The notes under the pieces are model-generated. The model saw nothing but the letters and a program-made list of their open reading frames with translations. It was not told where the DNA came from and did not search any database. Positions 2,051 through 38,785 of a stretch of 64,000 nucleotides of DNA are shown one piece after another. The translations under genes were made by a program, and so were the position numbers. This DNA is from Macrostomum hystrix. Its lineage: Eukaryota; Animalia; Platyhelminthes. Positions within the stretch are counted from its first letter, which is position 1; every line of letters begins with the position of its first letter. The stretch is taken from assembly GCA_950097015.1 (NCBI GenBank), contig CATNEN010000039.1:4216001-4280000 (forward strand), read 5' to 3'.

Positions 2051-2098
2051 AATAGCATGATGTGACTGCCATGTCCTCCTCCTCTGCCCCGCCCGCAG

Positions 2099-10302: not shown

Positions 10303-10666
10303 AGATTCTGCAAATTTTATCCAACTGCTCAATGACTTGATGCATGCTGAGAATGAGCCGAAACAGTTAATCTGTGAAATATTCGGCACGCATTTTATTA
10401 AAAATTAGCTAGCATTGTTAGGAATAAAGAAGATTTGCAACCACTTTTGTCTAAGCCCTATTAGCTTTGTACTTGGCTTAGCCCAGAACTTGTTAGCTTA
10501 TGCGTGATTTATTTTTTATCACAGTTTTTTGTAGTTTTATTAATAATAAGAGCAGAATAATCTCCATGCTAGTTGCATATTGGGCTAAGACTAAGATTAC
10601 GCTCCAAAGTACAGGCATTGTGTAGTTATTTGTAACCACGCACAACGCACAAGTCCATTGTTTCAG

Positions 10667-13600
10667 TCCGAACCAGCTGCTGAGAGGGCTTCATTGGTGG
10701 ACCTGCAGCCAGTGAGGCGGCAGTCAGCTGTTGTTTTGTGCGTCAACCAGGAATTTCAACAGCGGGTTCTATCAATCCTGAGTGATAACAACTGCGATGT
10801 AGTTCCTGATCAGACGCCTGAAGCTGTTGAGGCAGCTGATCGAGCTGTCATGGTGGTTCCAGTCGGATTGCCTTATCAACAGACTGATCGGTACACATCG
10901 ATCGTGGCGGTAAGAGTTATTTTACCATCTTTAAGTTTGTTCGAATTTTCGCTAAATTCAAAACGATGCTTTTTTCAGAGGGCAATCGAGTGCAACAGGG
11001 GCATCCTAATCGTTGAAGAAAAAGCTCGTGCTGCAGAGCGTTTGTTTGAGAGGCTTGGAAGATGTGATTCAGTCAAGCGAGCTCTGGCTGTGAATATAGA
11101 CATGGAGTTGCAAAGTTGGCTAAAGAATGGTGAGGCTTGTCCTTCCAGTTTGATCATTTTTTATATTAGTGCAAGTTTATTGACAGAAAACTGCTGCTTC
11201 GCCCACTTCAGAGCTGCTGTTCGTTCTACCCGTTGGCGACTCCGGGGCCACCGAAAGCCAGAGGACAAATTTCGAAAAGCTGATCAGCACCCTGTTGCGT
11301 TCCGGCTACCGACTGCGCCTAAGGCAGCCTCATAAATTCGAATGGAACGAAATTTCTGACAATATGGCCGAGTGTGACAAAGTGATCACTGTTTACTTTA
11401 GGCCACCAGGAAAAATCTCAAGCCACGCTCGTGGTCACCTCTACCAGATGGCTTTCGACCGGATGATTGCTATAAGAAAAGCGATCATGTGCATTGTAAA
11501 GATGTACGCCTCATATAGTGGCAGCGATGAAGACAGTGTGCTCGAAAATCACCGAATTCTAAATTTCGTTCACACTGTTGAATCTTCCGACATATCGCAA
11601 ATGCTGGCATCTGTCAACTCATGGCTCACGGAAGAGAAAATTGCAAGAGTCAGTAAGAGCATGGTCTTTGACAGTCTTGGAAATGGGCTGGCTTGGCAGT
11701 ATGCAACTGGATTTCTAGCCTACATCTTGCCTAATATCAACAGAGTAATAAGCAGAGAAATTATCGATTCTGATGGCCTCGTTAAAGCCGATCAGCTCAG
11801 ACAATATGGTCTCCAGGATATTAATCCTAAAAATATTTTCGTACTGAAGAAGTATTTTGTTCTCCTGAAAGAGACTGACATTGACTGCGACCGGCATGTA
11901 AATCCGAATCCATCGGAACTATTTCCCAACTGTCGCAAAATTGATCGTGTACGCCCAGCAACAGACCTGAGCCAGGGTGCTAGCCTGTCTCCTGGTACTG
12001 AAAATGTTTCCGCTGTGCAAGCTGATTCACACCAGCCCACCGAGTGCGCTAATCAATGTCTACTACTGACATTTGAAAGTCCTGGGTATCCTAAGATGAT
12101 TCCGCTTTACTTAGTCGAATTGGATCAGGAAATAGTGATCTCTTCTTTGGAAGGTAAAACGGAGCGGTACACCCATGTTATTATCTTGGGCGGCTTCGCA
12201 CCTCCTGTCACTGTCATTCGCGAGCTTCGCAGACCTAAAGAGTTGGATATCACGGAAGATATGCTGCACAATGCGTACACACTCTTTAAAGAAGAATTGC
12301 AGTTTATTTTAAACCACCCGAAGGCAAATAATTTACTGGCAAAGTTTGGCTCGGTTGATGTTTCACTCGAAGCCCCTGCCAATCCTGATAAGGCGGCGTG
12401 CATCATCGAATGGAAAACAACTGGAACCGAAGAGGAATGGCACCAACTGTTTTTGTCTCGCATCAAGGAGGAGATTTTCAATGACCGATGCAACGAGCCA
12501 ATAAGATCAATTGATGAACTTGTCCACAATGACGTTTTGGTTGTTAAGTTTTCAAAATCCGTTGAAGATCTCCATGATGCTGTAGTTGAAAGGCTTGAGC
12601 GCGAAGGCTTCAGTGTGGAAAATTTTCAACTTTTAAACAAAACTTTCGCGCAAGTGCTTGTCAGGTGTCAAAGAATGGTACTATTTGCATCTCTTGAGGA
12701 TTTAGAGAATTTCCAGCGTGACTACAACAGCTACGACTTTAAGGATTCTCGCCATAACTACTTGCTTAGAGACATCACGTCTGCTGTGACCTACGTATGT
12801 TTAGTCGTCGATCGCTTTAATTTATTTTATAATATTACTTTTTTATGAATATATATATTCATACATTATATTAATATACAGTATTATTGATTTAAAGTTT
12901 TATCATTTTAACTCTCTGTATTTTAGATTCACATGCGACAAGAGTACAATCTGGTTGTTGTCGTTATCACCCAAGAAGTGCAAAAAGACATTTACAGTGT
13001 TCTACCACCGGCGCTTAAGATTCTTCCCGAAAACAATGTTGTTTCAATTGTGAACCTTAGTGCCGACAGATTAGATGACATTCAATACGCCTCTACGGAG
13101 GGAGAAACGAGACATTCTTCTTTTAGCGATCTTATTCGTCGTCTTGGTAAATAAAATTTGACGATGAATAAAAAATCACAATTGGGTAAAATAGTGGAAA
13201 CCGACGGCAATTGAAACGCTTATTCATCTCGCCTTCTATTTTGTAGACCTAAGAGAGCGCTGCATTCAGGTGGACGAAAACCTGCCACTCATGTCTATGG
13301 CCTATGCCATGGCTGCCAATTCATGCTTTGGCTTCGTGCACCACCTCGTCCAGTGTAAGTATATCTGTGTTTTCTCATGTCACTTGACTTGACTGCTGAA
13401 TAATAGAATATTTTCATTATCAATATTGAATACAGGTGAGAAGGCCGGTAATTTGCCGTTCGAGTTGCCATACAAGTACGTGGTGCCTCGCAGTGCGCGT
13501 TATCCCGACTTGAAAAAGTTGCATCACGAGCTTGGCGAGCTGGGTGTTAGCTTTAAAGAGAAGATGTTCCGCAGTGACCAACGGAATTACAGGTTCAGCT

Positions 13601-13935
13601 TGTACACACGGGTGCAAAATTCTGTGGCCACCGAAGTGGCATTCGAAGTTCCCCCGTGTGTGCTGAACCTGCGCAAGCAAGCCAAGTGCGGCCTGGGCGG
13701 CCTTCGACGCACCAAGCTGAGGCAGAACCTCAACGAGTACATAATGGCCTTCCAGACGATGTTGGCTTGCATGAACTGGCAGCACTACGTTAAGGTATTG
13801 GACTGGGCGGACGATAAGTTTCAACCCGATGCGTGGCGCGATCCGACACGCGAGTACGCAGAGAGCCTCCTAAACTTGATCTTCTCTAATGAAGGAAATA
13901 TGCACACCAGTTCTTCTGATCTAGGCCTGGCTTAG
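10667..13935 (+). CDS. Gene A: TIR-TIR-STING-TIR-STING protein, about 930 aa (exons 10667-10909, 10979-11129, 11212-12794, 12927-13146, 13247-13354, 13436-13935); start codon not located
   Basis: Exons join in phase. STING-1: GNGLAWQYATGFLAYILPNI (human STING [20 protein letters not shown]), KKYFVLL, GGFAPPVTVIREL, TLFKEELQFIL. STING-2: AYAMAANSCFGF, YVVPRSARYPD, DQRNYRFSLY, VAFEVPPCVLNL. Three alpha/beta TIR-like segments; these are less certain than the STING calls. Confidence 0.8.
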
Positions 13936-16624
13936 CAGTACATCGGTATATGCTTAACTTGCATTGAGAAAATACTGGCTCCTTTGCTGAATCCAAAGTC
14001 TGTTTTAGCCTATTTGCTCTAACTCATCGTTTTCTTGGCCAACTTCAATTGCTTCTTCCGTGTTTCGGATTTGAGCTCTAATAATATCCATTTTCAATAT
14101 ATGCTCTTTCTTTATTTTAAATGACTAAGTAAGTTTTTCCAAAGGTGTTAATTGCCGTATCATTATAAGTAATCGCCCTTTTTGGTCATAGCTTCGATGT
14201 CATTGAGCCTATTTCTCATTCCATCTTTGCGCTCATTCAGATCTGGCTCGCTTGCGAATGAAATTTACGAGTAATATCATTAGCTAATTAGCCAATCTGC
14301 GTCAGGTACTCGCAAGATTTTCGTAACGATATGTATTGCTTATCTCTGCTCATTCAACTAATACTCTGAGTCCACATATGCAGCAGCTAAGTAAGATTAT
14401 CTCCAATCCCTTACTTTGTCTGCTCCAATAATTTAATTCCATAAAAATATAATATCACACAAGCGTTCACATCACGTAGGTACACCTACTCAAACACACC
14501 TCTGCTGTTCCATATTGGGCATATTTAGCTTTTACTTACCTCTCCTCGGGGTGTTGCACTGCTTTATATCAATATTGTTTGACAGTTTTACTTTATTTAA
14601 TTGCTAATTTAATTTGAAAGCTAAGAAAATTGAAGCGCTTTCCTAAGTGTAATCAATTTCTGCTTTATAGCCATGCTTTGCAGCCATTGTCCTGTACGGA
14701 AATTTATATTTTAACTTGTTAATTCCTCCTGCTATGCTAGGCTTTTCAAATTTTCTGCGCAGTCCTGCTGTTAGTCGAGTCTTTTCCCGCTCTTGTGTTA
14801 AATCATTTCTCAAGTCAGACCTGCCAAATTATTGTTTATTTTATTACCTGCTTATGGTACACAAACTTGTAATTTATTTCATTATTAAATTGAAGTTTTT
14901 CTAGAAGCCGCTATTTTCATTACCTAACCACAATTATGACTTGCTGATTGAGTGATTGTTTGTGTAAAACAATGTCTCTAGCCATCGGTGTCTAACAATG
15001 CTTTTCGCCGGTGTTACCTGCGAATATAGACTACTTTTAGTTGTTATAGTACCTTCTGAACTAACCTATTTTTCTAGATTGTTTTCGTTTCCTTTCTTGA
15101 TTCACATATTGGCTAAAATGCGGGCGTTGTTTTTGATTTGATGTGGTTCCATAATATTTGTGTATTGTTTCATTAGAATGATCATTAAATAAAATATATA
15201 AGTATCCTCGAGGCTACTTCAGGCGTACTCAGTGGCTTTTTCCACGATGCTAGGTGATTCTATAACTCTTTGTTTATATACATTGTTGTTGTTTTAAGTT
15301 ATAAGGGCCTTCAGTTTTACGCCCGTGTTTCAGTGGCAGCTATCAGAATTTCCGATAGGCCCGATCGAGTTGGCATAATTTGTTTATCGGTGAATCGTAT
15401 CAGTTCAGTGTTGAACCTACTTTTAATCTGCTCTTAAAATATAGACTTAAGGCTTGTTCACACTGCTGTAGTGTTGTAAGCATATTTTGTTGTTATTTCT
15501 GTCTTATAGTTTAGCGTAGAGCGCGTGTTCCGGCTATTTTTAGAACAGTAGAAATAATTAAAGTTGAGAAATTCACGCCTAGCCGGTCCGGGCCAGCCAG
15601 GTGGGCAGACGCCAACCACCCCATCAACTCTATCCCTGGGCTGGAGGCCCGGCCAATCAGATTGCGATCCGGCCTCGTTGAATTTCTACCCCGGCGCCCT
15701 AAGGCTTTAGAAAGTTGTCGCAGGTCTACAGGCTCAAGCTGCCAGCCACCCCCGCCCTAATCAGGGGTCAGTTCGGTCTCTTTTTACAGTTTTCAATTGC
15801 CCGAGTATAAGTCTAGTTTTATACTGACTGACTGACTCGAATTTAAGTCTGGATTCAAGCCTTCGTAAGTCTGAGCGGCGAGTAAAATAATTTACGAGTA
15901 AAAAATGTTACTTAATCTGGGAGATCGCAATTGTGAGCATCAACATAAACTCTTGAACTCATCATCAATATTCATCACCGCTGCTACTATTGAACCGCTT
16001 GGTAGTACACCGACCCCGGTGAGTAGGCAATTAGTAGCTAGCTTTAAATCCTCTTGATGCTCTAAGTAGGTTTATCTAGGCCTTTTGTCAAATATTACAC
16101 TGCGTACAAATGACTTGTTTTTGTGTACAACTTATGCTAAAAGGAACGGTTAATGAGTCATCTAAACAGTGTGAACGAGCCGAGTCCACGAATGCAAGCT
16201 AGTAGTCGCACGCAAGTCTATATCGGTCTCATTGTTTGCGCTTGGCACATTTTCCTTTTATTTCTATGGCATAGCTCTGAAGCTGTTGTTAATATCAAAC
16301 AGACTCGTGCTTTCTTAAGAAGCGCTTGCAAACTATAACAGATTTACAAGTATAATACGTAGCAGCCAATTGAAAAGCTCGCTTTTTGAAGCTCGGCTGT
16401 GGTCCAAATGGCAATCCAAGCGCTTTCAACTGCAGCCGCGGTTGCAGCTGTGTCTGTTTCTACTCTGCCTTGCTAGCTGAAACAGCTTGCTAAAATCTAA
16501 TCTTAACCTGCTGTCGCTGCGCCGCCAATGCACATAACATATTTAGTTTATACATTCCCTGCACTTCTGCAAAATCAAGTTTCACCTGACTGTATACTGT
16601 AGTTTAGCGGCACCCGAGCCTGAC

Positions 16625-18558
16625 GTGAACTGACTAACTAATAACTGTACTGTGAACTGACTAACTAATAACTGTGTACTGTGAACTGACTAACTAATAA
16701 CTGTACTGTGAACTGACTAACTAATAACTGTGTACTGTGAACTGACTAACTAATAACTGTACTGTGAACTGACTAACTAATAACTGTGTACTGTGAACTG
16801 ACTAACTAATAACTGTACTGTGAACTGACTAACTAATAACTGTGTACTGTGAACTGACTAACTAATAACTGTACTGTGAACTGACTAACTAATAACTGTG
16901 TACTGTGAACTGACTAACTAATAACTGTGTACTGTGAACTGACTAACTAATAACTGTGTACTGTGAACTGACTAACTAATAACTGTGTACTGTGAACTGA
17001 CTAACTAATAACTGTGTACTGTGAACTGACTAACTAATAACTGTGTACTGTGAACTGACCAACTAATAACTGTACTGTGAACTGACTAACTAATAACTGT
17101 GTACTGTGAACTGACCAACTAATAACTGTGTACTGTGAACTGACTAACTAATAACTGTACTGTGAACTGACCAACTAATAACTGTACTGTGAACTGACCA
17201 ACTAATAACTGTACTGTGAACTGACTAACTAATAACTGTACTGTGAACTGACTAACTAATAACTGTGTACTGTGAACTGACCAACTAATAACTGTGTACT
17301 GTGAACTGACTAACTAATAACTGTACTGTGAACTGACCAACTAATAACTGTGTACTGTGAACTGACCAACTAATAACTGTGTACTGTGAACTGACCAACT
17401 AATAACTGTGTACTGTGAACTGACCAACTAATAACTGTGTACTGTGAACTGACCAACTAATAACTGTGTACTGTGAACTGACCAACTAATAACTGTGTAC
17501 TGTGAACTGACTAACTAATAACTGTGTACTGTGAACTGACCAACTAATAACTGTACTGTGAACTGACCAACTAATAACTGTGTACTGTGAACTGACCAAC
17601 TAATAACTGTACTGTGAACTGACCAACTAATAACTGTGTACTGTGAACTGACCAACTAATAACTGTGTACTGTGAACTGACTAACTAATAACTGTACTGT
17701 GAACTGACCAACTAATAACTGTACTGTGAACTGACCAACTAATAACTGTGTACTGTGAACTGACTAACTAATAACTGTGTACTGTGAACTGACTAACTAA
17801 TAACTGTACTGTGAACTGACTAACTAATAACTGTACTGTGAACTGACCAACTAATAACTGTACTGTGAACTGACCAACTAATAACTGTACTGTGAACTGA
17901 CCAACTAATAACTGTACTGTGAACTGACCAACTAATAACTGTACTGTGAACTGACTAACTAATAACTGTGTACTGTGAACTGACTAACTAATAACTGTAC
18001 TGTGAACTGACTAACTAATAACTGTACTGTGAACTGACTAACTAATAACTGTACTGTGAACTGACCAACTAATAACTGTACTGTGAACTGACCAACTAAT
18101 AACTGTACTGTGAACTGACCAACTAATAACTGTACTGTGAACTGACCAACTAATAACTGTACTGTGAACTGACCAACTAATAACTGTACTGTGAACTGAC
18201 CAACTAATAACTGTACTGTGAACTGACCAACTAATAACTGTACTGTGAACTGACCAACTAATAACTGTACTGTGAACTGACTAACTAATAACTGTACTGT
18301 GAACTGACCAACTAATAACTGTACTGTGAACTGACTAACTAATAACTGTGTACTGTGAACTGACTAACTAATAACTGTACTGTGAACTGACTAACTAATA
18401 ACTGTACTGTGAACTGACTAACTAATAACTGTACTGTGAACTGACCAACTAATAACTGTACTGTGAACTGACCAACTAATAACTGTGTACTGTGAACTGA
18501 CTAACTAATAACTGTACTGTGAACTGACTAACTAATAACTGTACTGTGAACTGACTAA
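16625..18558. repeat. 27/29-bp satellite (gtgaactgacYaactaataactg[tg]tact), about 70 units
   Basis: Direct tandem repeats with a TG indel and a T/C variant. Confidence 0.97.
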
Positions 18559-18987
18559 AGTCGTGTCCCGTGCAGTTCTTATTTTGATCTTACAAATGAG
18601 CAAACAAATGACGGACAAAGCTGACTTTCTCGTCGCAGATGCAAGTCCAAAGCATGGTCACAAGAACCTCAGTGAGCATTCTAAGAATTCCCGCACGTGG
18701 AAGTTACACATCTTTCTACCTTGTCGAAGCCTTTACTCTATCTCAAGCGAAACAAAAAATTTTATAGTCAATAGTAGCTTCTCGTGCTTGATCAATCGAT
18801 TAGTTAAGAGCGAACAACTCGAACAAGCTTATTTCTGATATCAAGCAATCTGATTTCTGATTTCAAGCAATGTGGGGCACCTGCAGTTTCAAAATTTAAA
18901 GGCTGCGTGACTGATGAGTATTCGTTTCAACAGTGTGCCTTTTGTCATAACCAGCAAGCAATATGGTACAGGTATACTTGTATGAAT

Positions 18988-20888: not shown

Positions 20889-23800
20889 CTGAGAATGGCA
20901 GACTGAGAATGGTAGACTGAGAATTGTAGACTGAGAATGGTAGACTGAGAATAGTAGACTGAGAATGGTAGACTGAGAATAGTAGACTGAGAATAGTAGA
21001 CTGAGAATAGTAGACTGAGAATGGTAGACTGAGAACGGAAGACTGAGAATTGTAGACTGAGAATTGTAGACTGAGAATAGTAGTCTGAGAATAGTAGACT
21101 GAGAATGGTAGACTGAGAACGGAAGACTGAGAATTGTAGACTGAGAATTGTAGACTGAGAATGGTAGACTGATAATGGTAGACTGAGAATGGTAGACTGA
21201 GAATAGTAGACTGAGAATGGTAGACTGAGAATAGTAGACTGAGAATGGTAGACTGAGAATGGTAGACTGAGAATGGTAGACTGAGAATTGTAGACTGAGA
21301 ATAGTAGACTGAGAATGGTAGACTGAGAATAGTAGACTGAGAATGGTAGACTGAGAATAGTAGACTGAGAATGGTAGACTGAGAATGGTAGACTGAGAAA
21401 AGTAGACTGAGAATGGTAGACTGAGAATGGTAGACTGAGAATGGTAGACTAAGAATAGTAGACTGAGAATGGTAGACTGAGAATGGTAGACTGAGAATGG
21501 TAGACTGAGAATAGTAGACTGAGAATGGTAGACTGAGAATAGTAGACTGAGAATAGTAGACTGAGAATGGTAGACTGAGAATGGTAGACTGAGAATGGTA
21601 GACTGAGAATGGTAGACTGAGAATGGTAGACTGAGAATGGTAGACTGAGAACGGAAGCCTGAGAATTGTAGACTGAGAATTGTAGACTGAGAATTGTAGT
21701 CTGAGAATAGTAGACTGAGAATGGTAGACTGAGAACGGAAGACTGAGAATTGTAGACTGAGAATTGTAGACTGAGAATGGTAGACTGATAATGGTAGACT
21801 GAGAATGGTAGACTGAGAATGGTAGACTGAGAATGGTAGACTGAGAATGGTAGACTGAGAATGGTAGACTGAGAATGGTAGACTGAGAATTGTAGAATGA
21901 GAATAGTAGACTGAGAATAGTAGACTGAGAATAGTAGACTGAGAATGGTAGACTGAGAACGGAAGACTGAGAATTGTAGACGGAGAATTGTAGACTGAGA
22001 ATAGTAGTCTGAGAATGGTAGACTGAGAATGGTAGACTGAGAATGGTAGACTCAGAATGGTAGACTGAGAATAGTAGACTGAGAATGGTAGACTGAGAAT
22101 GGTAGACTGAGAATGGTAGACTGAGAATGGTAGACTGATAATGGTAGACTGAGAATGGTAGACTGAGAATAGTAGACTGAGAATGGTAGACTGAGAATAG
22201 TAGACTGAGAATGGTAGACTGAGAATGGTAGACTGAGAATGGTAGACTGAGAATAGTAGACTGAGAATGGTAGACTGAGAATGGTAGACTGAGAATGGTA
22301 GACTGAGAATGGTAGACTGAGAATGGTAGACTGAGAATGGTAGACTGAGAATTGTAGACTGAGAATTGTAGACTGAGAATAGTAGTCTGAGAATAGTAGA
22401 CTGAGAATGGTAGACTGAGAATGGTAGACTGAGAATAGTAGACTGAGAATGGTAGGCTGAGAATAGTAGACTGAGAATAGTAGACTGAGAATGGTAGACT
22501 GAGAATAGAAGACTGAGAATGGTAGACTGAGAATGGTAGACTGAGAATTGTAGACTGAGAATAGTAGACTGAGAATGGTAGACTGAGAATAGTAGACTGA
22601 GAATAGTAGACTGAGAATAGTAGACTGAGAACGGTAGACTGAGAATAGTAGACTGAGAATGGTAGACTGATAATGGTAGACTGAGAATGGTAGACTGAGA
22701 ATAGTAGACTGAGAATGGTAGACTGAGAATGGTAGACTGAGAATAGTAGACTGAGAATAGTAGACTGAGAATGGTAGACTGAGAACGGAAGACTGAGAAT
22801 TGTAGACTGAGAATTGTAGACTGAGAATAGTAGTCTGAGAATAGTAGACTGAGAATGGTAGACTGAGAACGGAAGACTGAGAATTGTAGACTGAGACTTG
22901 TAGACTGAGAACGGTAGACTGAGAATAGTAGACTGAGAATGGTAGACTGATAATGGTAGACTGAGAATGGTAGACTGAGAATAGTAGACTGAGAATGGTA
23001 GACTGAGAATGGTAGACTGAGAATAGTAGACTGAGAATAGTAGACTGAGAATGGTAGACTGAGAACGGAAGACTGAGAATTGTAGACTGAGAATTGTAGA
23101 CTGAGAATAGTAGTCTGAGAATAGTAGACTGAGAATGGTAGACTGAGAACGGAAGACTGAGAATTGTAGACTGAGACTTGTAGACTGAGAATGGTAGACT
23201 GATAATGGTAGACTGAGAATGGTAGACTGAGAATAGTAGACTGAGAATGGTAGACTGAGAATAGTAGACTGAGAATGGTAGACTGAGAATGGTAGACTGA
23301 GAATGGTAGACTGAGAATAGTAGACTGAGAATGGTAGACTGAGAATGGTAGACTGAGAATGGTAGACTGAGAATAGTAGACTGAGAATGGTAGACTGAGA
23401 ATGGTAGACTGAGAATGGTAGACTGAGAATAGTAGACTGTTCTCAGTCTGAGAATGGTAGAAAAGTAGACTGAGAATGGTAGACTGAGAATAGTAGACTG
23501 AGAATGGTAGACTGAGAATAGTAGACTGAGAATAGTAGACTGAGAATAGTAGACTGAGAATGGTAGACTGAGAACGGTAGACTGAGACTTGTAGACTGAG
23601 AATGGTAGACTGATAATGGTAGACTGAGAATGGTAGACTGAGAATAGTAGACTGAGAATGGTAGACTGAGAATAGTAGACTGAGAATGGTAGACTGAGAA
23701 TGGTAGACTGAGAATGGTAGACTGAGAATAGTAGACTGAGAATGGTAGACTGAGAATGGTAGACTGAGAATGGTAGACTGAGAATAGTAGACTGAGAATG

Positions 23801-26800
23801 GTAGACTGAGAATAGTAGACTGAGAATGGTAGACTGAGAATAGTAGACTGTTCTCAGTCTGAGAATGGTAGAAAAGTAGACTGAGAATGGTAGACTGAGA
23901 ATAGTAGACTGAGAATGGTAGACTGAGAATAGTAGACTGAGAATAGTAGACTGAGAATAGTAGACTGAGAATGGTAGACTGAGAACGGAAGACTGAGAAT
24001 TGTAGACTGAGAATTGTAGACTGAGAATAGTAGTCTGAGAATAGTAGACTGAGAATGGTAGACTGAGAACGGAAGACTGAGAATTGTAGACTGAGACTTG
24101 TAGACTGAGAATGGTAGACTGATAATGGTAGACTGAGAATGGTAGACTGAGAATAGTAGACTGAGAATGGTAGACTGAGAATAGTAGACTGAGAATGGTA
24201 GACTGAGAATGGTAGACTGAGAATGGTAGACTGAGAATGGTAGACTGAGAATAGTAGACTGAGAATGGTAGACTGAGAATGGTAGACTGAGAATGGTAGA
24301 CTGAGAATAGTAGACTGAGAATGGTAGACTGAGAATAGTAGACTGAGAATGGTAGACTGAGAATAGTAGACTGAGAAAAGTAGACTGAGAATGGTAGACT
24401 GAGAATGGTAGACTGAGAATAGTAGACTGAGAAAAGTAGACTGAGAATGGTAGACTGAGAATGGTAGACTGAGAATGGTAGACTGAGAATAGTAGACTGA
24501 GAATGGTAGACTGAGAATGGTAGACTGAGAATGGTAGACTGAGAATAGTAGACTGAGAATGGTAGACTGAGAATAGTAGACTGAGAATGGTAGACTGAGA
24601 ATAGTAGACTGTTCTCAGTCTGAGAATGGTAGAAAAGTAGACTGAGAATGGTAGACTGAGAATAGTAGACTGAGAATGGTAGACTGAGAATAGTAGACTG
24701 AGAATAGTAGACTGAGAATAGTAGACTGAGAATGGTAGACTGAGAACGGAAGACTGAGAATTGTAGACTGAGAATTGTAGACTGAGAATAGTAGTCTGAG
24801 AATAGTAGACTGAGAATGGTAGACTGAGAACGGAAGACTGAGAATTGTAGACTGAGACTTGTAGACTGAGAATGGTAGACTGATAATGGTAGACTGAGAA
24901 TGGTAGACTGAGAATAGTAGACTGAGAATGGTAGACTGAGAATAGTAGACTGAGAATGGTAGACTGAGAATGGTAGACTGAGAATGGTAGACTGAGAATA
25001 GTAGACTGAGAATGGTAGACTGAGAATGGTAGACTGAGAATGGTAGACTGAGAATAGTAGACTGAGAACGGTAGACTGAGAATAGTAGACTGAGAATGGT
25101 AGACTGATAATGGTAGACTGAGAATGGTAGACTGAGAATAGTAGACTGAGAATGGTAGACTGAGAATGGTAGACTGAGAATAGTAGACTGAGAATAGTAG
25201 ACTGAGAATGGTAGACTGAGAACGGAAGACTGAGAATTGTAGACTGAGAATTGTAGACTGAGAATAGTAGTCTGAGAATAGTAGACTGAGAATGGTAGAC
25301 TGAGAACGGAAGACTGAGAATTGTAGACTGAGACTTGTAGACTGAGAATGGTAGACTGATAATGGTAGACTGAGAATGGTAGACTGAGAATAGTAGACTG
25401 AGAATGGTAGACTGAGAATAGTAGACTGAGAATGGTAGACTGAGAATGGTAGACTGAGAATGGTAGACTGAGAATAGTAGACTGAGAATGGTAGACTGAG
25501 AATGGTAGACTGAGAATGGTAGACTGAGAATAGTAGACTGAGAAAAGTAGACTGAGAATGGTAGACTGAGAATGGTAGACTGAGAATGGTAGACTGAGAA
25601 TAGTAGACTGAGAAAAGTGGACTGAGAATGGTAGACTGAGAATGGTAGACTGAGAATTGTAGACTGAGAATAGTAGACTGAGAATGGTAGACTGAGAATA
25701 GTAGACTGAGAATGGTAGACTGAGAATGGTAGACTGAGAATGGTAGACTGAGAATGGTAGACTGAGAATGGTAGACTGAGAATGGTAGACTGAGAATGGT
25801 AGACTGAGAATGGTAGACTGAGAATAGTAGACTGAGAAAAGTAGACTGAGAATGGTAGACTGAGAATGGTAGACTGAGAATGGTAGACTAAGAATAGTAG
25901 ACTGAGAATGGTAGACTGAGAATGGTAGACTGAGAATGGTAGACTGAGAATAGTAGACTGAGAATGGTAGACTGAGAATAGTAGACTGAGAATAGTAGAC
26001 TGAGAATGGTAGACTGAGAATGGTAGACTGAGAATGGTAGACTGAGAATGGTAGACTGAGAATGGTAGACTGAGAATGGTAGACTGAGAACGGAAGCCTG
26101 AGAATTGTAGACTGAGAATTGTAGACTGAGAATTGTAGTCTGAGAATAGTAGACTGAGAATGGTAGACTGAGAACGGAAGACTGAGAATTGTAGACTGAG
26201 AATTGTAGACTGAGAATGGTAGACTGATAATGGTAGACTGAGAATGGTAGACTGAGAATGGTAGACTGAGAATGGTAGACTGAGAATGGTAGACTGAGAA
26301 TGGTAGACTGAGAATGGTAGACTGAGAATTGTAGAATGAGAATAGTAGACTGAGAATAGTAGACTGAGAATAGTAGACTGAGAATGGTAGACTGAGAACG
26401 GAAGACTGAGAATTGTAGACGGAGAATTGTAGACTGAGAATAGTAGTCTGAGAATGGTAGACTGAGAATGGTAGACTGAGAATGGTAGACTCAGAATGGT
26501 AGACTGAGAATAGTAGACTGAGAATGGTAGACTGAGAATGGTAGACTGAGAATGGTAGACTGAGAATGGTAGACTGATAATGGTAGACTGAGAATGGTAG
26601 ACTGAGAATAGTAGACTGAGAATGGTAGACTGAGAATAGTAGACTGAGAATGGTAGACTGAGAATGGTAGACTGAGAATGGTAGACTGAGAATAGTAGAC
26701 TGAGAATGGTAGACTGAGAATGGTAGACTGAGAATGGTAGACTGAGAATGGTAGACTGAGAATGGTAGACTGAGAATGGTAGACTGAGAATTGTAGACTG

Positions 26801-29800
26801 AGAATTGTAGACTGAGAATAGTAGTCTGAGAATAGTAGACTGAGAATGGTAGACTGAGAATGGTAGACTGAGAATAGTAGACTGAGAATGGTAGGCTGAG
26901 AATAGTAGACTGAGAATAGTAGACTGAGAATGGTAGACTGAGAATAGAAGACTGAGAATGGTAGACTGAGAATGGTAGACTGAGAATTGTAGACTGAGAA
27001 TAGTAGACTGAGAATGGTAGACTGAGAATAGTAGACTGAGAATAGTAGACTGAGAATAGTAGACTGAGAACGGTAGACTGAGAATAGTAGACTGAGAATG
27101 GTAGACTGATAATGGTAGACTGAGAATGGTAGACTGAGAATGGTAGACTGAGAATGGTAGACTGAGAATGGTAGACTGAGAATAGTAGACTGAGAATAGT
27201 AGACTGAGAATGGTAGACTGAGAACGGAAGACTGAGAATTGTAGACTGAGAATTGTAGACTGAGAATAGTAGTCTGAGAATAGTAGACTGAGAATGGTAG
27301 ACTGAGAACGGAAGACTGAGAATTGTAGACTGAGACTTGTAGACTGAGAACGGTAGACTGAGAATAGTAGACTGAGAATGGTAGACTGATAATGGTAGAC
27401 TGAGAATGGTAGACTGAGAATAGTAGACTGAGAATGGTAGACTGAGAATGGTAGACTGAGAATAGTAGACTGAGAATAGTAGACTGAGAATGGTAGACTG
27501 AGAACGGAAGACTGAGAATTGTAGACTGAGAATTGTAGACTGAGAATAGTAGTCTGAGAATAGTAGACTGAGAATGGTAGACTGAGAACGGAAGACTGAG
27601 AATTGTAGACTGAGACTTGTAGACTGAGAATGGTAGACTGATAATGGTAGACTGAGAATGGTAGACTGAGAATAGTAGACTGAGAATGGTAGACTGAGAA
27701 TAGTAGACTGAGAATGGTAGACTGAGAATGGTAGACTGAGAATGGTAGACTGAGAATAGTAGACTGAGAATGGTAGACTGAGAATGGTAGACTGAGAATG
27801 GTAGACTGAGAATAGTAGACTGAGAATGGTAGACTGAGAATAGTAGACTGAGAATGGTAGACTGAGAATAGTAGACTGTTCTCAGTCTGAGAATGGTAGA
27901 AAAGTAGACTGAGAATGGTAGACTGAGAATAGTAGACTGAGAATGGTAGACTGAGAATAGTAGACTGAGAATAGTAGACTGAGAATAGTAGACTGAGAAT
28001 GGTAGACTGAGAACGGTAGACTGAGACTTGTAGACTGAGAATGGTAGACTGATAATGGTAGACTGAGAATGGTAGACTGAGAATAGTAGACTGAGAATGG
28101 TAGACTGAGAATAGTAGACTGAGAATGGTAGACTGAGAATGGTAGACTGAGAATGGTAGACTGAGAATAGTAGACTGAGAATGGTAGACTGAGAATGGTA
28201 GACTGAGAATGGTAGACTGAGAATAGTAGACTGAGAATGGTAGACTGAGAATAGTAGACTGAGAATGGTAGACTGAGAATAGTAGACTGTTCTCAGTCTG
28301 AGAATGGTAGAAAAGTAGACTGAGAATGGTAGACTGAGAATAGTAGACTGAGAATGGTAGACTGAGAATAGTAGACTGAGAATAGTAGACTGAGAATAGT
28401 AGACTGAGAATGGTAGACTGAGAACGGAAGACTGAGAATTGTAGACTGAGAATTGTAGACTGAGAATAGTAGTCTGAGAATAGTAGACTGAGAATGGTAG
28501 ACTGAGAACGGAAGACTGAGAATTGTAGACTGAGACTTGTAGACTGAGAATGGTAGACTGAGAATGGTAGACTGAGAATAGTAGACTGAGAATGGTAGAC
28601 TGAGAATAGTAGACTGAGAATGGTAGACTGAGAATGGTAGACTGAGAATGGTAGACTGAGAATAGTAGACTGAGAATGGTAGACTGAGAATGGTAGACTG
28701 AGAATGGTAGACTGAGAATAGTAGACTGAGAATGGTAGACTGAGAATAGTAGACTGAGAATGGTAGACTGAGAATAGTAGACTGTTCTCAGTCTGAGAAT
28801 GGTAGAAAAGTAGACTGAGAATGGTAGACTGAGAATAGTAGACTGAGAATGGTAGACTGAGAATAGTAGACTGAGAATAGTAGACTGAGAATAGTAGACT
28901 GAGAATGGTAGACTGAGAACGGAAGACTGAGAATTGTAGACTGAGAATTGTAGACTGAGAATAGTAGTCTGAGAATAGTAGACTGAGAATGGTAGACTGA
29001 GAACGGAAGACTGAGAATTGTAGACTGAGACTTGTAGACTGAGAATGGTAGACTGATAATGGTAGACTGAGAATGGTAGACTGAGAATAGTAGACTGAGA
29101 ATGGTAGACTGAGAATAGTAGACTGAGAATAGTAGACTGAGAATGGTAGACTGAGAATGGTAGACTGAGAATGGTAGACTGAGAATAGTAGACTGAGAAT
29201 GGTAGACTGAGAATAGTAGACTGAGAATGGTAGACTGAGAATAGTAGACTGAGAAAAGTAGACTGAGAATGGTAGACTGAGAATGGTAGACTGAGAATAG
29301 TAGACTGAGAAAAGTAGACTGAGAATGGTAGACTGAGAATGGTAGACTGAGAATGGTAGACTGAGAATAGTAGACTGAGAATGGTAGACTGAGAATGGTA
29401 GACTGAGAATGGTAGACTGAGAATAGTAGACTGAGAATGGTAGACTGAGAATAGTAGACTGAGAATGGTAGACTGAGAATAGTAGACTGTTCTCAGTCTG
29501 AGAATGGTAGAAAAGTAGACTGAGAATGGTAGACTGAGAATAGTAGACTGAGAATGGTAGACTGAGAATAGTAGACTGAGAATAGTAGACTGAGAATAGT
29601 AGACTGAGAATGGTAGACTGAGAACGGAAGACTGAGAATTGTAGACTGAGAATTGTAGACTGAGAATAGTAGTCTGAGAATAGTAGACTGAGAATGGTAG
29701 ACTGAGAACGGAAGACTGAGAATTGTAGACTGAGACTTGTAGACTGAGAATAGTAGACTGATAATGGTAGACTGAGAATGGTAGACTGAGAATAGTAGAC

Positions 29801-30650
29801 TGAGAATGGTAGACTGAGAATAGTAGACTGAGAATGGTAGACTGAGAATGGTAGACTGAGAATGGTAGACTGAGAATAGTAGACTGAGAATGGTAGACTG
29901 AGAATGGTAGACTGAGAATGGTAGACTGAGAATAGTAGACTGAGAATGGTAGACTGAGAATAGTAGACTGAGAATGGTAGACTGAGAATAGTAGACTGAG
30001 AAAAGTAGACTGAGAATGGTAGACTGAGAATGGTAGACTGAGAATAGTAGACTGAGAAAAGTAGACTGAGAATGGTAGACTGAGAATGGTAGACTGAGAA
30101 TGGTAGACTGAGAATAGTAGACTGAGAATGGCAGACTGAGAATAGTAGACTGAGAACGGTAGACTGAGAATAGTAGACTGAGAATGGTAGACTGAGAATA
30201 GTAGACTGAGAATAGTAGACTGAGAATAGTAGACTGAGAATGGTAGACTGAGAACGGAAGACTGAGAATTGTAGACTGAGAATTGTAGACTGAGAATAGT
30301 AGTCTGAGAATAGTAGACTGAGAATGGTAGACTGAGAACGGAAGACTGAGAATTGTAGACTGAGACTTGTAGACTGAGAATGGTAGACTGATAATGGTAG
30401 ACTGAGAATGGTAGACTGAGAATAGTAGACTGAGAATGGTAGACTGAGAATAGTAGACTGAGAATGGTAGACTGAGAATGGTAGACTGAGAATGGCAGAC
30501 TGAGAATGGTAGACTGAGAATGGCAGACTGAGAATAGTAGACTGAGAATGGTAGACTGAGAATGGCAGACTGATAATGGTAGACTGAGAATGGTAGACTG
30601 AGAATAGTAGACTGAGAAGTCTACTATTCTCAGTACCATTATCAGTAGAC
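20889..30650. repeat. 9.7-kb satellite of 14-bp units (gactgagaatRgta) with higher-order repeats
   Basis: Roughly 690 units with recurring variant units and inverted units. Confidence 0.98.
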
Positions 30651-32372: not shown

Positions 32373-34379
32373 ATGCTTCTCGTGATTATCATTGGAGCCA
32401 TCAGTCAAGGAATTTGGCCTTGGGAACGATTGCGCAAAATTCTGGACGAGGTATTCGATGAAGTCTCAATCGTAAATACCGGCCAGGGCGTTGACTTTGG
32501 CGAACTGAAGCAGCAGATAGCAGCCTGCGATGCCATCTTAGTGCTCGAAAATGAGGCACCCAAAGCAGTATTGCCAAAAGATGTACTCAGCACACTTCAA
32601 GGGTTGATTGTGACAAAGGTGAGTTTTTTACTATGTATTTTACAATGAGCGCGGCCAAGAATCATAATCAGCTAATCCAGTCTGTCAGACATAGATAAAA
32701 AATTTATGGCAACATTATGGCAACGAAAATGTATTTCAGTGCTTCGAAAATCGAAAGCGAGTCGCACACATACTGAAAAATAACATCGAAGATCAAGTCG
32801 GTACGAGCTGGATAAAAAGCAACCGAGCAAGGAAGGTTTTTTGGTTCTACTACTTGAAAACGACTCCTGAAGATGCATTGATGCCTCAGTTAGAGAAAAA
32901 TAAATCTGGTAAAGGTCTTACCTGTCCTAAAATATTCCAGCATGTTTGTTTTCATCTTTTTATAAAAACAGCGCAGTAAAAGGCCTTCCACAAACTTGCT
33001 TTTCAGTGAAAAAATTTAGCAGTCCAGGAGAGAGCTTCGCGTGGCAGCTTGCCGCTGGGTTTCTGTCCTACATTCTGCCTAATTTGAGAGGCCATATTCG
33101 GGCTTCACTCTTCGACCAAAGCGGCTGCATCAGACAAGATTTGCTGACCGAGTTCAGAGTCACGGGCATTGACCCGACCAGAATTCTCGTCGTTCCGAGG
33201 TTCCTGCTGGTGCTCGATGAGCGCATTGTGCTCGGTCAGCAGTCGGTGTCCAGCATGTGTCCGCAACACCTGTTTCCCGGCTGCTCAAAGATCTGCAGCG
33301 CATCCACTGAGCTGAGCCTCGAGTTCGACAGTCCTGGATACAAGAAGCGAGTGCCAGCATACCTGATGCAGCTCGAGCAGCCCCTCACAAAGGGTCAGTC
33401 GACATTCACACACGCTGTGATCTTCGGCGGCTATGCTGCACCGATGTTCGTCATGCAGAAGCTGAGCATGAGCGATGAAGAGAAGAAGCAGATGTTTGAG
33501 CAGTTCAGAGATGAGCTCAGCTTCATTCAGCATCACCCGAGAGCGAATGCGATTCTGAGAGAGCTCAGCGACTGCAGCTCAGATGGCGTCAGCGAGTCGG
33601 AGCCGAGTGCACTTCACGTGATCGACATGAAGGAGGAAGACTCGCTGAGGTCTTCCATCGTTGCTAGCATTGAGGACTTTCTGCTTTTTGATGACTGGAC
33701 TCTCGTTTCAGAAAATGAGAATGGTTCAAGCCTAACAACACCTGGAGACGAGGTTCCATTTATGTCCATGGCTTTTGCGATGGCTGCGAACGTGTGGTTT
33801 GGATTTGCTCAGCTTGTCAGTGATTGTAAGTTCATATTGTGGCTTTATAATTGTTGATTGCTTTCTTCTTATCAGCAGACAGCCTTTATCATTCGGAGCC
33901 AAACTCACTTTATTGTAGACCTTTCGCAACTATCCACTGATGGGGAGCAGATGCCGTTCGACCTGCCGTACTTCTTCGTGATCCCGAGGAGCGGTCGCTT
34001 CCCTGACGAGTCGAAGCTGCTCAGCCGGTTCGCCGAGGTCGGAGCTCAATCGAGTGTGCAGGAGTTTCGAGCAGCCAGCGGCAGACGCTACAGCTTCCGA
34101 GTGCACGAGTGGAGGTCGCGCACGATCGCATTCGAGATTCCGCCGTGTGTGCTCGGGCTTCGAAGGCAGGCGGAGTGCGGCGTCGGTGGAATCGACGCAG
34201 GAGACCTGCCGACTCACCTTGCCGAGTTCCGAGACGCTCTCAGCAAGCTCGCTGCAGACGGTGGAGACCGATTCCGGGTGGTCGAGTGGGATGACGTCAC
34301 TGGCTTTGAAGAATTATCATGCATAGATAATAAATTTGCAGTGAATCTTCTTGACTTTTTGGATTTCAAATGCTACTGA
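32373..34379 (+). CDS. Gene B: TIR-STING-STING protein, 564 aa (exons 32373-32618, 32740-32908, 33007-33825, 33919-34379)
   Basis: Exons sum to 1695 nt in frame. TIR-like N-terminus (LLVIII...ELKQQIAACDAILVLE); STING-1 GESFAWQLAAGFLSYILPNL...GYKKRV...GGYAAP...EQFRDELSFI; STING-2 AFAMAANVWFGF...FVIPRSGRFPD...GRRYSF...AFEIPPCVLGL. Confidence 0.82.
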
Positions 34380-35160
34380 TCACAATTGATTAACGCAAAA
34401 GTTCCGGCTGAAATAAATAATATATTCAGCAACGCGTTGAGACGTTTACAAGAAGCGGGATTGTTCGGGCCTTAGCTGCGGGGTGGCTCAGCTTGACCCC
34501 GGATCGATGTGTTGCAATCGTCGGCATACAAGGCCGATTAGTTACCGACTTTTGTCTGGGAGCGATGATCTAGCACCTAGACCTAGGGTCAAAGAGTCTG
34601 TGTGAATTAGGTTTCAATATTCGATCGCAAGTTAATTATGTTGCGCTTGATTCTAAAGCCCTTTGCATAAACAGTGCTTAGTACAGTGTGAGCACTTGTA
34701 ATTATTTATTTGATATGTACATTAAATCAACATAAGCATTGAATTTGATTTTATAATTGCATGTGCCAAGAATTCTCCATGGCGGAAACCAAAAAATGAA
34801 ATATAAGGCATTTAAAACAAACTACGAGTAGTTTGTGTTTAAAAAACGTAATTGCTTCTATGCAGTCTGGAGTGTTTCGCTGAAGTAGGGCTCCTGTTGA
34901 AGGAAAAGCCATGGAAAAGCCTCGGAAATACCTTCGGAATTTATTCGTTAAAAATAGCTGAAGACATGCGCTTCTAAGCTATGACGAGCTACAGGTACGA
35001 TCGTTCTACAGTATCCTCGGAATTGTTATATATGTTATTTATGCTATGGACTGGCATATTGAGCGTGTATTAGCCGTCTTTCTTGATGCAAATTAAATGC
35101 GCTAATCAACGCAGAACTTGTTTCATATTTTATTCAAGAAGATGCATGGCTTTTTAGTCC

Positions 35161-35600
35161 TTAAACAGAAGAAAGACTACTGGGGTATTTCAAATACCCA
35201 CATTCATATTTTCTCTGTATCTCTCAAAATATTCAACCAATCGCCATGAAAATCCAGAACACAGACTAAAATTTTCCTCTCTATCCGATAAAACAATATC
35301 CAGAATCACAAAACATCGGCATCGTCGAGATATTCAATGATTCTCGTCGGGGTATCTGGAGGCAAACACCACCAATAAAGCCATGTTTTTCTACTCACAA
35401 AATTTCATCATATAACCATGTCGGTAGATAAAATAGATTCTTTTTTAATATTACACTATTGAACCAACATGAATTCACCATAGAGGTTTACAAGGAGCAA
35501 TGTTAGTTGTCCTTGTCACCAAGGTCTTCGACAAGAATCGCAGGATGTCTCGACGATGTTGACGTCGGACGGCTTTGAAAGTCAGTTCATCGTAAAGGGC
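35161..35600. mobile_element. TTAA-flanked MITE family, copy 2
   Basis: Starts ttaaacagaagaaagactactggggtatttcaaataccc; internal catcggcatcgtcgagatattcaa is the reverse complement of sequence in the 41.8-42.3 kb copy. Confidence 0.55.
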
Positions 35601-36788
35601 GGAAAGTTTTGATACAAATGGTGGACTTTCACGAAGATCGGTCATCCAGTTTGGGAGCTATCGTGAATTAGGCAGTGGGTAGTTGAAATACTCCTTGCCC
35701 CCTGTCTTTCCCAAGAGAAAAATCGAGCGGTCTTTCTCCTGTTAAGCAGGCGCAAAGTTCCAGTTAGCCCGAAAATGCATGCATGCGCCCTATACCATAG
35801 TAACCTTTGACTGCACAGTAAAGCAGCTACTCTTAGAGTATGAAGTTTCTTGGAAACAAGCAAACTACAATAACCTTCTGTACTGCGATGATCTTGTCAT
35901 ATTTGACCAGGACGGATAACCCAGAACTGCAACATTATATTGACTCGATAAGGTTTCAGAATTCTGTCCACAAAACAACCTTGAAAAAAAGTTTTTCAAA
36001 AAGCCACATCAACCCATCTTCTACTGAGGATGTCAAAGATAGTGAGCAAAGTAGTGCAGAAATTCAGAAAAAACATAAAGAACTAAATGCCGTTTGGGAT
36101 ACATTTGGGATACATCTGCAGAATTAACTGGAATACTACATCCAGGATCCTAAAACATTCATTCGTTATATGCGTTTCCAGGAATTTATTATTGCATATC
36201 AATCTGACGCAAAATATCTACTGCGTTTGTACGTCCCTCTATAATTAAAGACTCTGTTATATATGTACTTTAAACAGTTCATACTACGGTTGACAGGCAG
36301 TAGCAAGGCGGCACATAAAATTGCTTCACAACGCTTTTGGCTTAACTGGTTGAAACTGCCGTCTGACTAGGAACTTTCTTCGAAAAGCGTGTAATTATGC
36401 CGGAAATTCCATGGAAATGCCATGCAGCATAATTGCTCACTTTATTTAGAAACACACGCGCTAGTGAGTCACTTGCTGCCCTAGTCCGACAGGCCCATTG
36501 TCTTTCTTTCCTTCCCACAGATAGCACTCATTCTGAGCAGGCTAAGCAAAAGGCCAAACCACGGAATTTCCACGGATTTTTCGTTGAATTTCTTCCAGAG
36601 AGGCGATGTCGTACTGAAGGTCGAAGGCAGAAAAACTAAATGCGAGTGTATACTTACAGGCAATTCATGATTTAGACTGTTTTTTGGTGACTAAACCACT
36701 TTTTTATTTTCTGTGCGACCCCTCTAGAATCATAAGTGGAAACAGTCGTAACTTTCTGGAACTACTCGAAATCCTCTGAGGTGAAGCA

Positions 36789-38785
36789 ATGTCCGAAAGA
36801 GTTATGAACGTCGATTTGTTAGCCATCGGTTCGGCGGGAGAAGCAGCGATTCACACAATGGAATTCATTGAGCTTTCCATGAAGGAGTTCGACCTGAATA
36901 TTATTGAACTATCACCAAGCAGCCTAGTCAACATAGAAGAATGCGAGCTACTCAGGGAGTTGCTGCCAACAAGCGACTGTGCAGTTGTCCTTCTACTCAA
37001 CGAGCCAGTACAAGAACCAATGCGGCTGAGACTATTAGCATATCTGCATGAAGTAGCCATCAGAATAGTAAGTTTTATACAATATATCTATTGCAACAGC
37101 TTTTATACACAAATTTGACATCACACAATCTTCTCTAAAACAACAGTGCCCAAATAAGCGAAGACCTGGACTTCATGTAATAAAAAACTTCACTTGCAAC
37201 GCCAAAGTCGGAAAAATCTTCCAAATTGATGAGCAACAGCGGCAGTGTTTTCACTTCTGGGATTTCAAAATAACACCAGTGGAAGAATTCGCTGGGCATT
37301 TACGAACATCAATACAAAGTATGTTTGAATTTCATATACTTGTACCTTTCAGTGTGCCCTTTTTTCCGACAACGATTGACTATTTTACTGGTAAAAACGA
37401 TACTTTTAGAAGTTAGAAGTCCCAGCACTCATGGAGAGAGCTTCGCGTGGCAGCTTGCAGCTGGGTTTCTGTCCTACATTCTGCCTAATTTGAGAGGCCA
37501 GATTCGGGCTTCACTCTTCGACCAAAGCGGCTGCATCAGACAAGATTTGCTGACCGAGTTCAGAGTCACGGGCATTGACCCGACCAGAATTCTCGTCGTT
37601 CCGAGGTTCCTGCTGGTGCTCGATGAGCGCATTGTGCTCGGTCAGCAGTCGGTGTCCAGCATGTGTCCGCAACACCTGTTTCCCGGCTGCTCAAAGATCT
37701 GCAGCGCATCCACTGAGCTGAGCCTCGAGTTCGACAGTCCTGGATACAAGAAGCGAGTGCCAGCATACCTGATGCAGCTCGAGCAGCCCCTCACAAAGGG
37801 TCAGTCGACATTCACACACGCTGTGATCTTCGGCGGCTATGCTGCACCGATGTTCGTCATGCAGAAGCTGAGCATGAGCGATGAAGAGAAGAAGCAGATG
37901 TTTGAGCAGTTCAGAGATGAGCTCAGCTTCATTCAGCATCACCCGAGAGCGAATGCGATTCTGAGAGAGCTCAGCGACTGCAGCTCAGATGGCGTCAGCG
38001 AGTCGGAGCCGAGTGCACTTCACGTGATCGACATGAAGGAGGAAGACTCGCTGAGGTCTTCCATCGTTGCTAGCATTGAGGACTTTCTGCTTTTTGATGA
38101 CTGGAGCTTGGTTTCAGGTGTCATAGAGCAGTTGTGCGAGCTGTCATTCGATTTTCCTGTCAAGTCGACGGCCTTTGCCTTGGCTGCGAACGTGTGGTTT
38201 GGATTTGCTCAGCTTGTCAGTGATTGTAAGTTCATATTGTGGCTTTTTAATTGTTAATTGCTTTCTTCTTATCAGCAGACAGCCTTTATCATTCGGAGCC
38301 AAACTCACTTTATTGTAGACCTTTCGCAACTATCCACTGATGGGGAGCAGATGCCGTTCGACCTGCCGTACTTCTTCGTGATCCCGAGGAGCGGTCGCTT
38401 CCCTGACGAGTCGAAGCTGCTCAGCCGGTTCGCCGAGGTCGGAGCTCAGTCGAGTGTGCAGGAGTTTCGAGCAGCCAGCGGCAGACGCTACAGCTTCCGA
38501 GTGCACGAGTGGAGGTCGCGCAGGATCGCATTCGAGATTCCGCCGTGTGTGCTCGGGCTTCGAAGGCAGGCGGAGTGCGGCGTCGGTGGAATCGACGCAG
38601 GAGACCTGCCGACTCACCTTGCCGAGCTCCGAGACGCTCTCAGCAAGCTCGCTGCAGACGGTGGAGACCGATTCCGGGTGGTCGAGTGGGATGACGTCAC
38701 TGGCTTTGAACAGCTTCTGTGGACTGATCCGACTAGTGGTTACTGTTTGAGTCTATTGGACTTTTTGGAAACCCGTTTTTTCTGA
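36789..38785 (+). CDS. Gene C: TIR-STING-STING protein, 577 aa (exons 36789-37067, 37147-37318, 37410-38225, 38319-38785)
   Basis: Exons sum to 1734 nt in frame; intron phases match gene B. STING cores are nearly identical to gene B; the TIR-like N-terminus is divergent (VDLLAIG...ELLPTSDCAVVLLL...YLHEVAIR). Confidence 0.82.

Follow-up and report, generated by a model that had tools for sequence, protein, structure and literature searches.

The 64,000-nucleotide stretch of the Macrostomum hystrix genome analysed here (the window; contig CATNEN010000039.1, positions 4,216,001 to 4,280,000, assembly GCA_950097015.1) carries three intact, spliced paralogues on its + strand (10667-13935, 32373-34379 and 36789-38785, from a reading of the window sequence), each predicted to encode a soluble protein in which two complete domains of the STING fold, termed here STING1 and STING2, lie in one chain. 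An original prediction, made from the nucleotide sequence, had proposed that three paralogues each join two STING regions in a single soluble chain, and fold searches and exon models bear this out. The double-STING observation lies far beyond chance, because only STING proteins top the fold searches and because gene 1 is spliced as modelled. Taken as a whole, the family is best explained as a set of cytosolic sensors with the order alpha/beta domain, STING1, linker or alpha/beta domain, STING2, whose two STING domains would form an intramolecular pseudo-heterodimer, a reading that we hold with about even confidence.

The STING fold of both domains was established on predicted structures. For STING1, a 582-aa relative from M. 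lignano (P0002), 66-67 % identical to genes 2 and 3, was used as a proxy and not the window chain itself; its model was built from a 12-row alignment, with a predicted local distance difference test score (pLDDT) of 68.6 and a whole-chain predicted template-modelling score (pTM) of 0.62. Residues 157-381 of this model superpose on Nematostella STING (5cfp) with Z 15.8 and a root-mean-square deviation of 2.5 Å over 167 of 181 residues (VIA-align), and the comparison with anemone and human STING gives Z 15.8-14, the top rows all being STING. The whole P0002 model likewise retrieves only STING among its top Foldseek matches, the best being oyster TIR-STING 6wt7 (E 1.6e-7, ~400 columns). For STING2, the query was the window's own last exon of gene 1 (exon f, 13438-13932, first helix excluded), for which AlphaFold2 returned a model with pLDDT 81 and pTM 0.75. 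In an unbiased VIA-align comparison of this model with 48,161 PDB chains, the 15 best are all STING (Z 11.7-6.5; coral, fly, human, oyster, choanoflagellate and bacterial), the next fold scoring 4.5, and the top Foldseek matches are again all STING (best E 2.5e-6). With its first helix included, STING2 of P0002 (residues 407-578) matches bacterial STINGs at Z 11.4-10.5; the helix occupies residues 409-434 of the model, inside the part whose match to bacterial STING runs from residue 407. On these models, each chain carries two complete STING-fold domains. A complex prediction between STING1 (155-385) and STING2 (405-560) of P0002 gave an interaction prediction score from aligned errors (ipSAE) of 0.00; it was alignment-free, with an uncertain partner fold, and carries no weight either way.

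Sequence profiles detect this fold poorly. The Pfam STING_LBD family (PF15009) reaches gene 1 with 13.8 bits (E 0.039, first helix only), below its cut-off of 27 bits, and gives no match on genes 2 and 3; P0001, a relative of gene 1 by similarity, scores 18.5 bits, also below the cut-off. The profile check proposed with the original prediction thus stayed sub-threshold; the predicted structures do match STING. A profile built from eight STING1 copies of this genome finds STING among PDB sequences at E 1.2e-4, again through the first helix only. Across the genome, searched as 220 Mb in 42 pieces, PF15009 identifies no canonical STING, its sole match being a sub-threshold member of the present family (25.6 bits). 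A search of a protein atlas with P0002 residues 405-582 returned no usable match.

The gene models are as follows. Gene 1 comprises six exons totalling 2805 nt (934 codons plus stop), with no in-frame stop in any exon; gene 2 comprises four exons totalling 1695 nt (564 codons, 565 including the stop), and gene 3 four exons totalling 1734 nt (577 codons, 578 including the stop). The exon models of genes 2 and 3 were built from the sequence and from alignment to relatives, and all of their exons are likewise open.

Gene 1 exon a, 10667..10909, + strand: first part of N-terminal alpha/beta domain 1; begins after the acceptor cag/TCC; the intron at 10910-10978 is spliced out in runs X4, X5 and X6.
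Gene 1 exon b, 10979..11129, + strand: remainder of alpha/beta domain 1; GT..AG joints 10908>10978 and 11128>11211 in three runs; matches P0001 residues 3-127.
Gene 1 exon c, 11212..12794, + strand: alpha/beta domain 2, STING1 and the start of the middle alpha/beta domain; stop-free; 66 % identical to P0001.
Parts of exon c, + strand: alpha/beta domain 2 at ~11212-11650; STING1 at ~11652-12419 (first helix 11679-11726); start of the middle alpha/beta domain at ~12480-12794.
Gene 1 exon d, 12927..13146, + strand: second half of the middle alpha/beta domain (possibly TIR-like) between the STING domains; joints 12794>12927 and 13145>13246 in three runs; aligns to P0001 and P0003.
Gene 1 exon e, 13247..13354, + strand: linker plus STING2 first helix, LPLMSMAYAMAANSCFGFVHHLV; both flanking introns removed in three runs; 83 % identical to P0001.
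Gene 1 exon f, 13436..13935, + strand: beta core and lid of STING2 (R-x-Y at RNYRF), followed by its helices, tail and stop codon, as read from the AlphaFold2 model and fold searches.
Gene 2 exon 1, 32373..32618, + strand: ATG and first part of the N-terminal alpha/beta domain; GTGAGT donor; 39-40 % identical to residues 1-63 of the relatives P0004 and P0006.
Gene 2 exon 2, 32740..32908, + strand: remainder of the N-terminal domain; its frame, CFENRKRVAHILKNN..., parallels CLNKRRKVLHVVKNN of P0004; AG acceptor and GT donor; a sequence model.
Gene 2 exon 3, 33007..33825, + strand: STING1, variable linker and STING2 first helix; 67 % identical to P0002.
Gene 2 exon 4, 33919..34379, + strand: STING2 core, tail and stop; 66 % identical to P0002; the junction codon TAC (Y) fits '...LSDY' of P0002.
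Gene 3 exon 1, 36789..37067, + strand: ATG and an N-terminal domain that differs from that of gene 2, with no DNA similarity there; GTAAGT donor.
Gene 3 exon 2, 37147..37318, + strand: CPNKRRPGLHVIKN...; splice sites keep the frame, stop-free; a sequence model.
Gene 3 exon 3, 37410..38225, + strand: STING1, linker and STING2 first helix.
Gene 3 exon 4, 38319..38785, + strand: STING2 core, tail and stop.

Gene 1 thus reads alpha/beta, alpha/beta, STING1, alpha/beta, STING2, and genes 2 and 3 have one alpha/beta domain and lack the middle one, so that an extra domain of ~190 residues separates STING1 from STING2 in gene 1 and a linker of ~25 residues does so in genes 2 and 3. Gene 1 gives the STING2 first helix a small exon of its own (13247-13354, LPLMSMAYAMAANSCFGFV); genes 2 and 3 encode it where exon 3 ends.

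Expression evidence was obtained for gene 1 by aligning contigs of four public runs to 10150-14150, the splice sites having been read from the sequence beforehand. Runs X4, X5 and X6 (one study, one organism) each yield a single ~5.2 kb contig that lacks precisely the five modelled GT..AG introns and shows 0 mismatches. An intron-free contig derives from RNA, and gene 1 is therefore expressed with both STING halves on one mRNA in these three runs; for gene 1 this removes the case of separate genes, which the original prediction had named as a possible refutation. At the 5' end, the reading frame of gene 1 follows a stop at 10592 and contains a sole in-frame ATG at 10850, and homology to P0001 begins directly after the acceptor at 10666/10667. 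Since the spliced leaders of Macrostomum reportedly have ATG as their last letters (PMC10468722) and homology starts at the acceptor, we infer that the start codon of gene 1 is donated by a spliced leader at 10667. Upstream of the gene 1 frame (10150-10666 region), the RNA-derived contigs show no splicing over more than 1.1 kb, and this RNA would be either a long 5' leader or, if the gene is trans-spliced, its outron.

Conserved positions distinguish the two STING domains. The original prediction had quoted a series of motifs shared with human STING; all of them occur in + strand translations, but the list mixes the two domains of gene 1, each domain nevertheless being complete. Thus GLAWQYATGFLAYILP and LFKEELQFIL belong to STING1 of gene 1 (open reading frame, ORF, 11295-12848), YVVPRSARYPD, RNYRFSLY and FEVPPCVLNL to STING2 of gene 1 (ORF 13426-13935), and FAWQLAAGFLSYILP to genes 2 and 3. 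Among 12 copies of STING2, R49, Y51, F69 and P72 (exon f numbering) are invariant and E70 is present in at least 90 %; in the exon f model, R49 and Y51 lie in the beta2-beta3 hairpin and the F-E-x-P motif at the end of the next strand. Read by motif, these places correspond to lid R238 and Y240 and to E260 and P264 of human STING. STING1 retains the first-helix motif G-x-x-AW-x5-FL-x4-P, whose residues are invariant across 8 copies, as are Y146, Y153, A183 and P185; it has an aromatic F at the G-F-L position and no Arg at the lid position, and it bears long insertions (e.g. ~35 extra residues in gene 1). STING1 and STING2 are therefore unequal halves, R-x-Y being kept in STING2 and the lid Arg missing in STING1.

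The proteins are predicted to be soluble, as first proposed: no membrane helix was found in the window exons, the best 19-residue Kyte-Doolittle mean being at most 1.4 in every exon (1.15-1.29 in P0001 and P0002; 1.49 in P0003). The claim that they are TIR-fused holds in part. An alpha/beta domain does precede STING in each chain, three such regions occurring in gene 1 (two before STING1 and one between the STING domains) and one each in genes 2 and 3, but the evidence carries its identity no further than TIR-like. The N-terminal domain of P0002 (residues 12-152) is modelled as five strands alternating with five helices, with a pLDDT of only 55-67, and its best structural match is the plant TIR of RPS4 (4c6t; Z 11.4 over 128 of 141 residues), a value tied with other flavodoxin-like folds; within one Z unit lie decarboxylase wing domains (11.4 and 11.2), a receiver domain (10.7), and B12-binding domains and GTPases (~10); other TIRs score Z 9.4-9.7. 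Neither a TIR-type family (Pfam at E up to 1, or PADLOC) nor any other Pfam or PADLOC family was found on the window exons and their relatives.

A possible source of ligand is present in the same genome. The search for cGAS-like receptors (cGLRs) suggested by the original prediction recovered 103 genomic loci above the cut-off of PF20266 (Mab-21_C), and the six loci sampled (L022-L027; e.g. L023, G000:C9:1137900-1141300) all carry GS...DxD...D nucleotidyltransferase motifs. In 6/6 of these, the upstream exon reads (V/I/T)GS(F/Y)x(D/E)G(W/C)(G/A)N ... (S/A)D(I/M)D, and the next exon supplies P(S/A)(V/I/M)D in 5/6 and PAQD in the sixth; on motif content, this GS, DxD and D set is that of an active cGAS-type enzyme. 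The same loci, which the Mab-21 core model (PF03281) misses, have a helical C-terminal extension of ~300 aa; the names of their M. lignano relatives describe Mab-21 domain proteins, in some cases with ankyrin repeats. PF03281 has one genomic match, L001 (G000:C24:4851713-4855261, ORF 1153-2508, minus strand), which is not a cGLR but the orthologue of the developmental protein MAB21L1 (PDB 5eog, E 2.8e-174), extended at its N terminus by a Gly/Gln-rich stretch. The absence of any cGLR from the genome, a conclusion drawn from PF03281 alone, is ruled out by the 103 PF20266 loci. No PF18144 (SMODS) match was found in the genome.

One further Mab-21_C locus, L017 (G000:C10:2410700-2413500, ORF 686-2182, minus strand), encodes a single-exon 498-aa protein that is weakly MiD51-like; it has no clear GS/DxD motif and one paralogue only, is not representative of the large family, and appears to belong to a separate branch that is probably non-catalytic.

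The STING family itself comprises ~13 genes in this genome, each matching both STING1 and STING2 in a family profile search: three in the window, one 15 Mb off on the same piece, ~8 clustered on C2, and one each on C38 and C7. In a phmmer search of 1.84 billion representatives, the 517-aa exon gave three matches, two of them named as M. lignano and the third being P0001; close relatives are 60-80 % identical and are annotated as hypothetical or by domain only, all named ones coming from Macrostomum lignano. Macrostomum is so far the only genus in which these sequence searches place the family. The C2 cluster spans 8967264-9105032 (8.97-9.10 Mb), and its member at 9104355-9105032 lies nearest the Pfam STING_LBD cut-off (25.6 vs 27 bits).

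Genes 2 and 3 form a mosaic pair. Positions 33018-34310 and 37424-38710 share 96 % DNA identity over 1.3 kb, intron included, with differences at 5/673 nt in STING1, 2/96 in the intron and 3/390 in STING2, so that the STING cores and the intron separating them are ~99 % identical; 46/134 nt differ in the linker (33691-33824), the C-terminal tail has diverged and the N-terminal exons cannot be aligned. Outside the linker, the differences are too few for a ratio of nonsynonymous to synonymous substitution rates (dN/dS). Such a pattern points to cores kept alike by gene conversion, or to fast change in the remaining parts of the genes.

The mechanism that best accommodates these observations would proceed as follows. 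The first helices of STING1 and STING2 in one chain would bring the two domains together as a pseudo-heterodimer whose single nucleotide pocket is lopsided, a single chain thus performing the role normally filled by a STING homodimer. The ligand would be a messenger of the cyclic di-nucleotide type, supplied by the genome's cGAS-like enzymes or by bacteria; its binding would shut the STING2 lid and promote oligomerisation, which would gather the N-terminal alpha/beta (TIR-like) domains as the output. We infer intramolecular pairing because the halves are unequal, the linker of genes 2 and 3 is short and the whole-chain pTM is 0.62. A more specific version, in which Macrostomum has a private cGLR-STING system whose asymmetric pocket (a canonical half, with the R-x-Y lid of STING2, and an altered half, STING1) is tuned to an asymmetric messenger from the more than 100 cGAS-like enzymes and whose output is clustering of TIR-like domains, is tentative and somewhat unlikely.

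Several points weigh against the pseudo-heterodimer sensor. The step from two modelled STING folds to an intramolecular pseudo-dimer with one pocket is plausible and unproven, and the ligand, its binding and the output are putative. The identity of STING2 depends on a structure predicted from a 12-sequence alignment; a profile of 12 STING2 copies does not match STING among PDB sequences, and the hhalign comparison of the STING1 and STING2 profiles is not significant (E 0.089). It is at the level of motifs, rather than by residue-level structural alignment, that R-x-Y and F-E-x-P are likened to R238/Y240 and E260/P264 of the human protein. The flanking domains are no more than TIR-like alpha/beta domains in the models, and genes 2 and 3 are known as sequence models, expression having been shown for gene 1.

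The main rival reading, which we regard as unlikely, is that the STING domains pair between chains (1:1 and 2:2, or head to tail), producing dimer-bridging chains or filaments in which symmetric pockets control polymer growth. The solved STINGs are all symmetric homodimers that signal through side-by-side oligomers, according to the titles of the matched structures and to PMC9402430. The ~190-residue domain between the STING domains of gene 1 means that close intramolecular pairing is not forced by the linker, and the linker varies more than any other part when genes 2 and 3 are compared, although its ~25 residues in these genes would permit such pairing. Divergence of STING1 and STING2 past profile recognition, together with their unlike lid positions, fits complementing halves better than symmetric pockets. 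An alternative that we consider quite unlikely makes STING2 the sole working ligand sensor and STING1 a degenerate scaffold or autoinhibitory decoy. The invariant R-x-Y and F-E-x-P of STING2, and the missing lid Arg and long insertions of STING1, are what this alternative would predict, but the first helix of STING1 is the part closest to canonical STING, and the few STING1 differences between genes 2 and 3 and its four invariant positions in 8 copies (Y146, Y153, A183 and P185) point to constraint, not decay. Use of the STING fold outside nucleotide-messenger immunity, for example in a structural or developmental role, would suit the marginal sequence similarity to STING but is very unlikely given the invariant ligand-contact-like motifs, a clustered expansion with mosaic, fast-changing linkers, tails and N-domains of the kind usual in immune gene families, and the very large cGAS-like family in the same genome.

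The surroundings of the three genes are unusually rich in satellite DNA. Between genes 1 and 2, a 9.7-kb array (20889-30618) contains ~700 copies of the 14-bp unit CTGAGAATGGTAGA, with a GC skew of ~+0.6; its minus strand gives the false appearance of a 1382-aa ORF. Further flanking tandem arrays lie at 16625-18558 and 7882-9199 (a 27/56-bp unit repeated 35-70 times and a 32/64-bp unit repeated 18-30 times).

Among described systems, the closest in build are oyster proteins with two STING and two TIR domains, listed and uncharacterised (PMC11103948, 2024). The original prediction had regarded the architecture as not known to be characterised, and the literature yielded no paper on a characterised single-chain double STING, nor on STING in Macrostomum; the doubled build, however, was already on record in that oyster list. 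Members of the oyster class, like gene 1, are soluble and have two STING domains per chain, with an alpha/beta region (TIR in the oyster) ahead of each. The oyster domains are found by standard profiles, whereas the flatworm domains fall under the Pfam cut-off; genes 2 and 3 lack a domain between the STING domains, and gene 1 has an extra N-terminal domain. The resemblance is one of build, the flatworm domains being TIR-like, and it may reflect either shared descent or independent duplication.

TIR-STING proteins with one STING domain have solved structures from oyster and bacteria, which are among the Foldseek matches. C. gigas TIR-STING (PDB 6wt6/6wt7) likewise has its STING ligand-binding domain behind an N-terminal alpha/beta domain, is cytosolic, and is the best Foldseek match of P0002; unlike the flatworm proteins, it has one STING per chain, dimerises between chains and has a TIR recognisable by sequence. 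The bacterial TIR-STING of the cyclic-oligonucleotide-based antiphage signalling system (CBASS; e.g. PDB 7un8, 9lmq) has the same soluble alpha/beta-STING build, with the compact STING2 scoring Z 10.5-11.4 against bacterial STING; it is also the source of the borrowed model in which output arises by ligand-driven filament formation. It differs in that each chain has a single STING and the TIR is a proven NADase, and no sequence similarity to it was detected (PADLOC). Superposition of STING1 on animal transmembrane STING (human, Nematostella, coral and Drosophila) gives Z 13-15.8, and the first-helix motif is common to both, but the flatworm proteins lack the N-terminal four-helix membrane domain, have no recognisable C-terminal TBK1 tail and carry two domains per chain. 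The family is a new, very diverged soluble alpha/beta-STING variant of a doubled build already listed in oysters, to which the window contributes three members, one with its splicing proven at the level of reads and two forming the mosaic pair, as well as an unbiased fold test of a STING2 that the window itself encodes.

Planarians have been reported to lack cGAS and STING (PMC13563047), and most platyhelminths to lack cGLRs other than Mab-21 (PMC9980059). An early-branching, free-living flatworm nevertheless has ~13 genes for the STING fold that escape standard profiles, and its cGAS-like family is very large; since these folds escape the profiles in Macrostomum, the "loss" of STING in flatworms may be partly a problem of detection, or may have occurred later within the phylum. 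Macrostomum is a transgenic and RNA interference model, which makes the pathway testable in the animal itself. If the proposed mechanism is true, the stoichiometry of a single-chain STING would be set at one pocket per chain and its halves could evolve apart, so that the family would serve as a probe of how pocket asymmetry relates to ligand choice.

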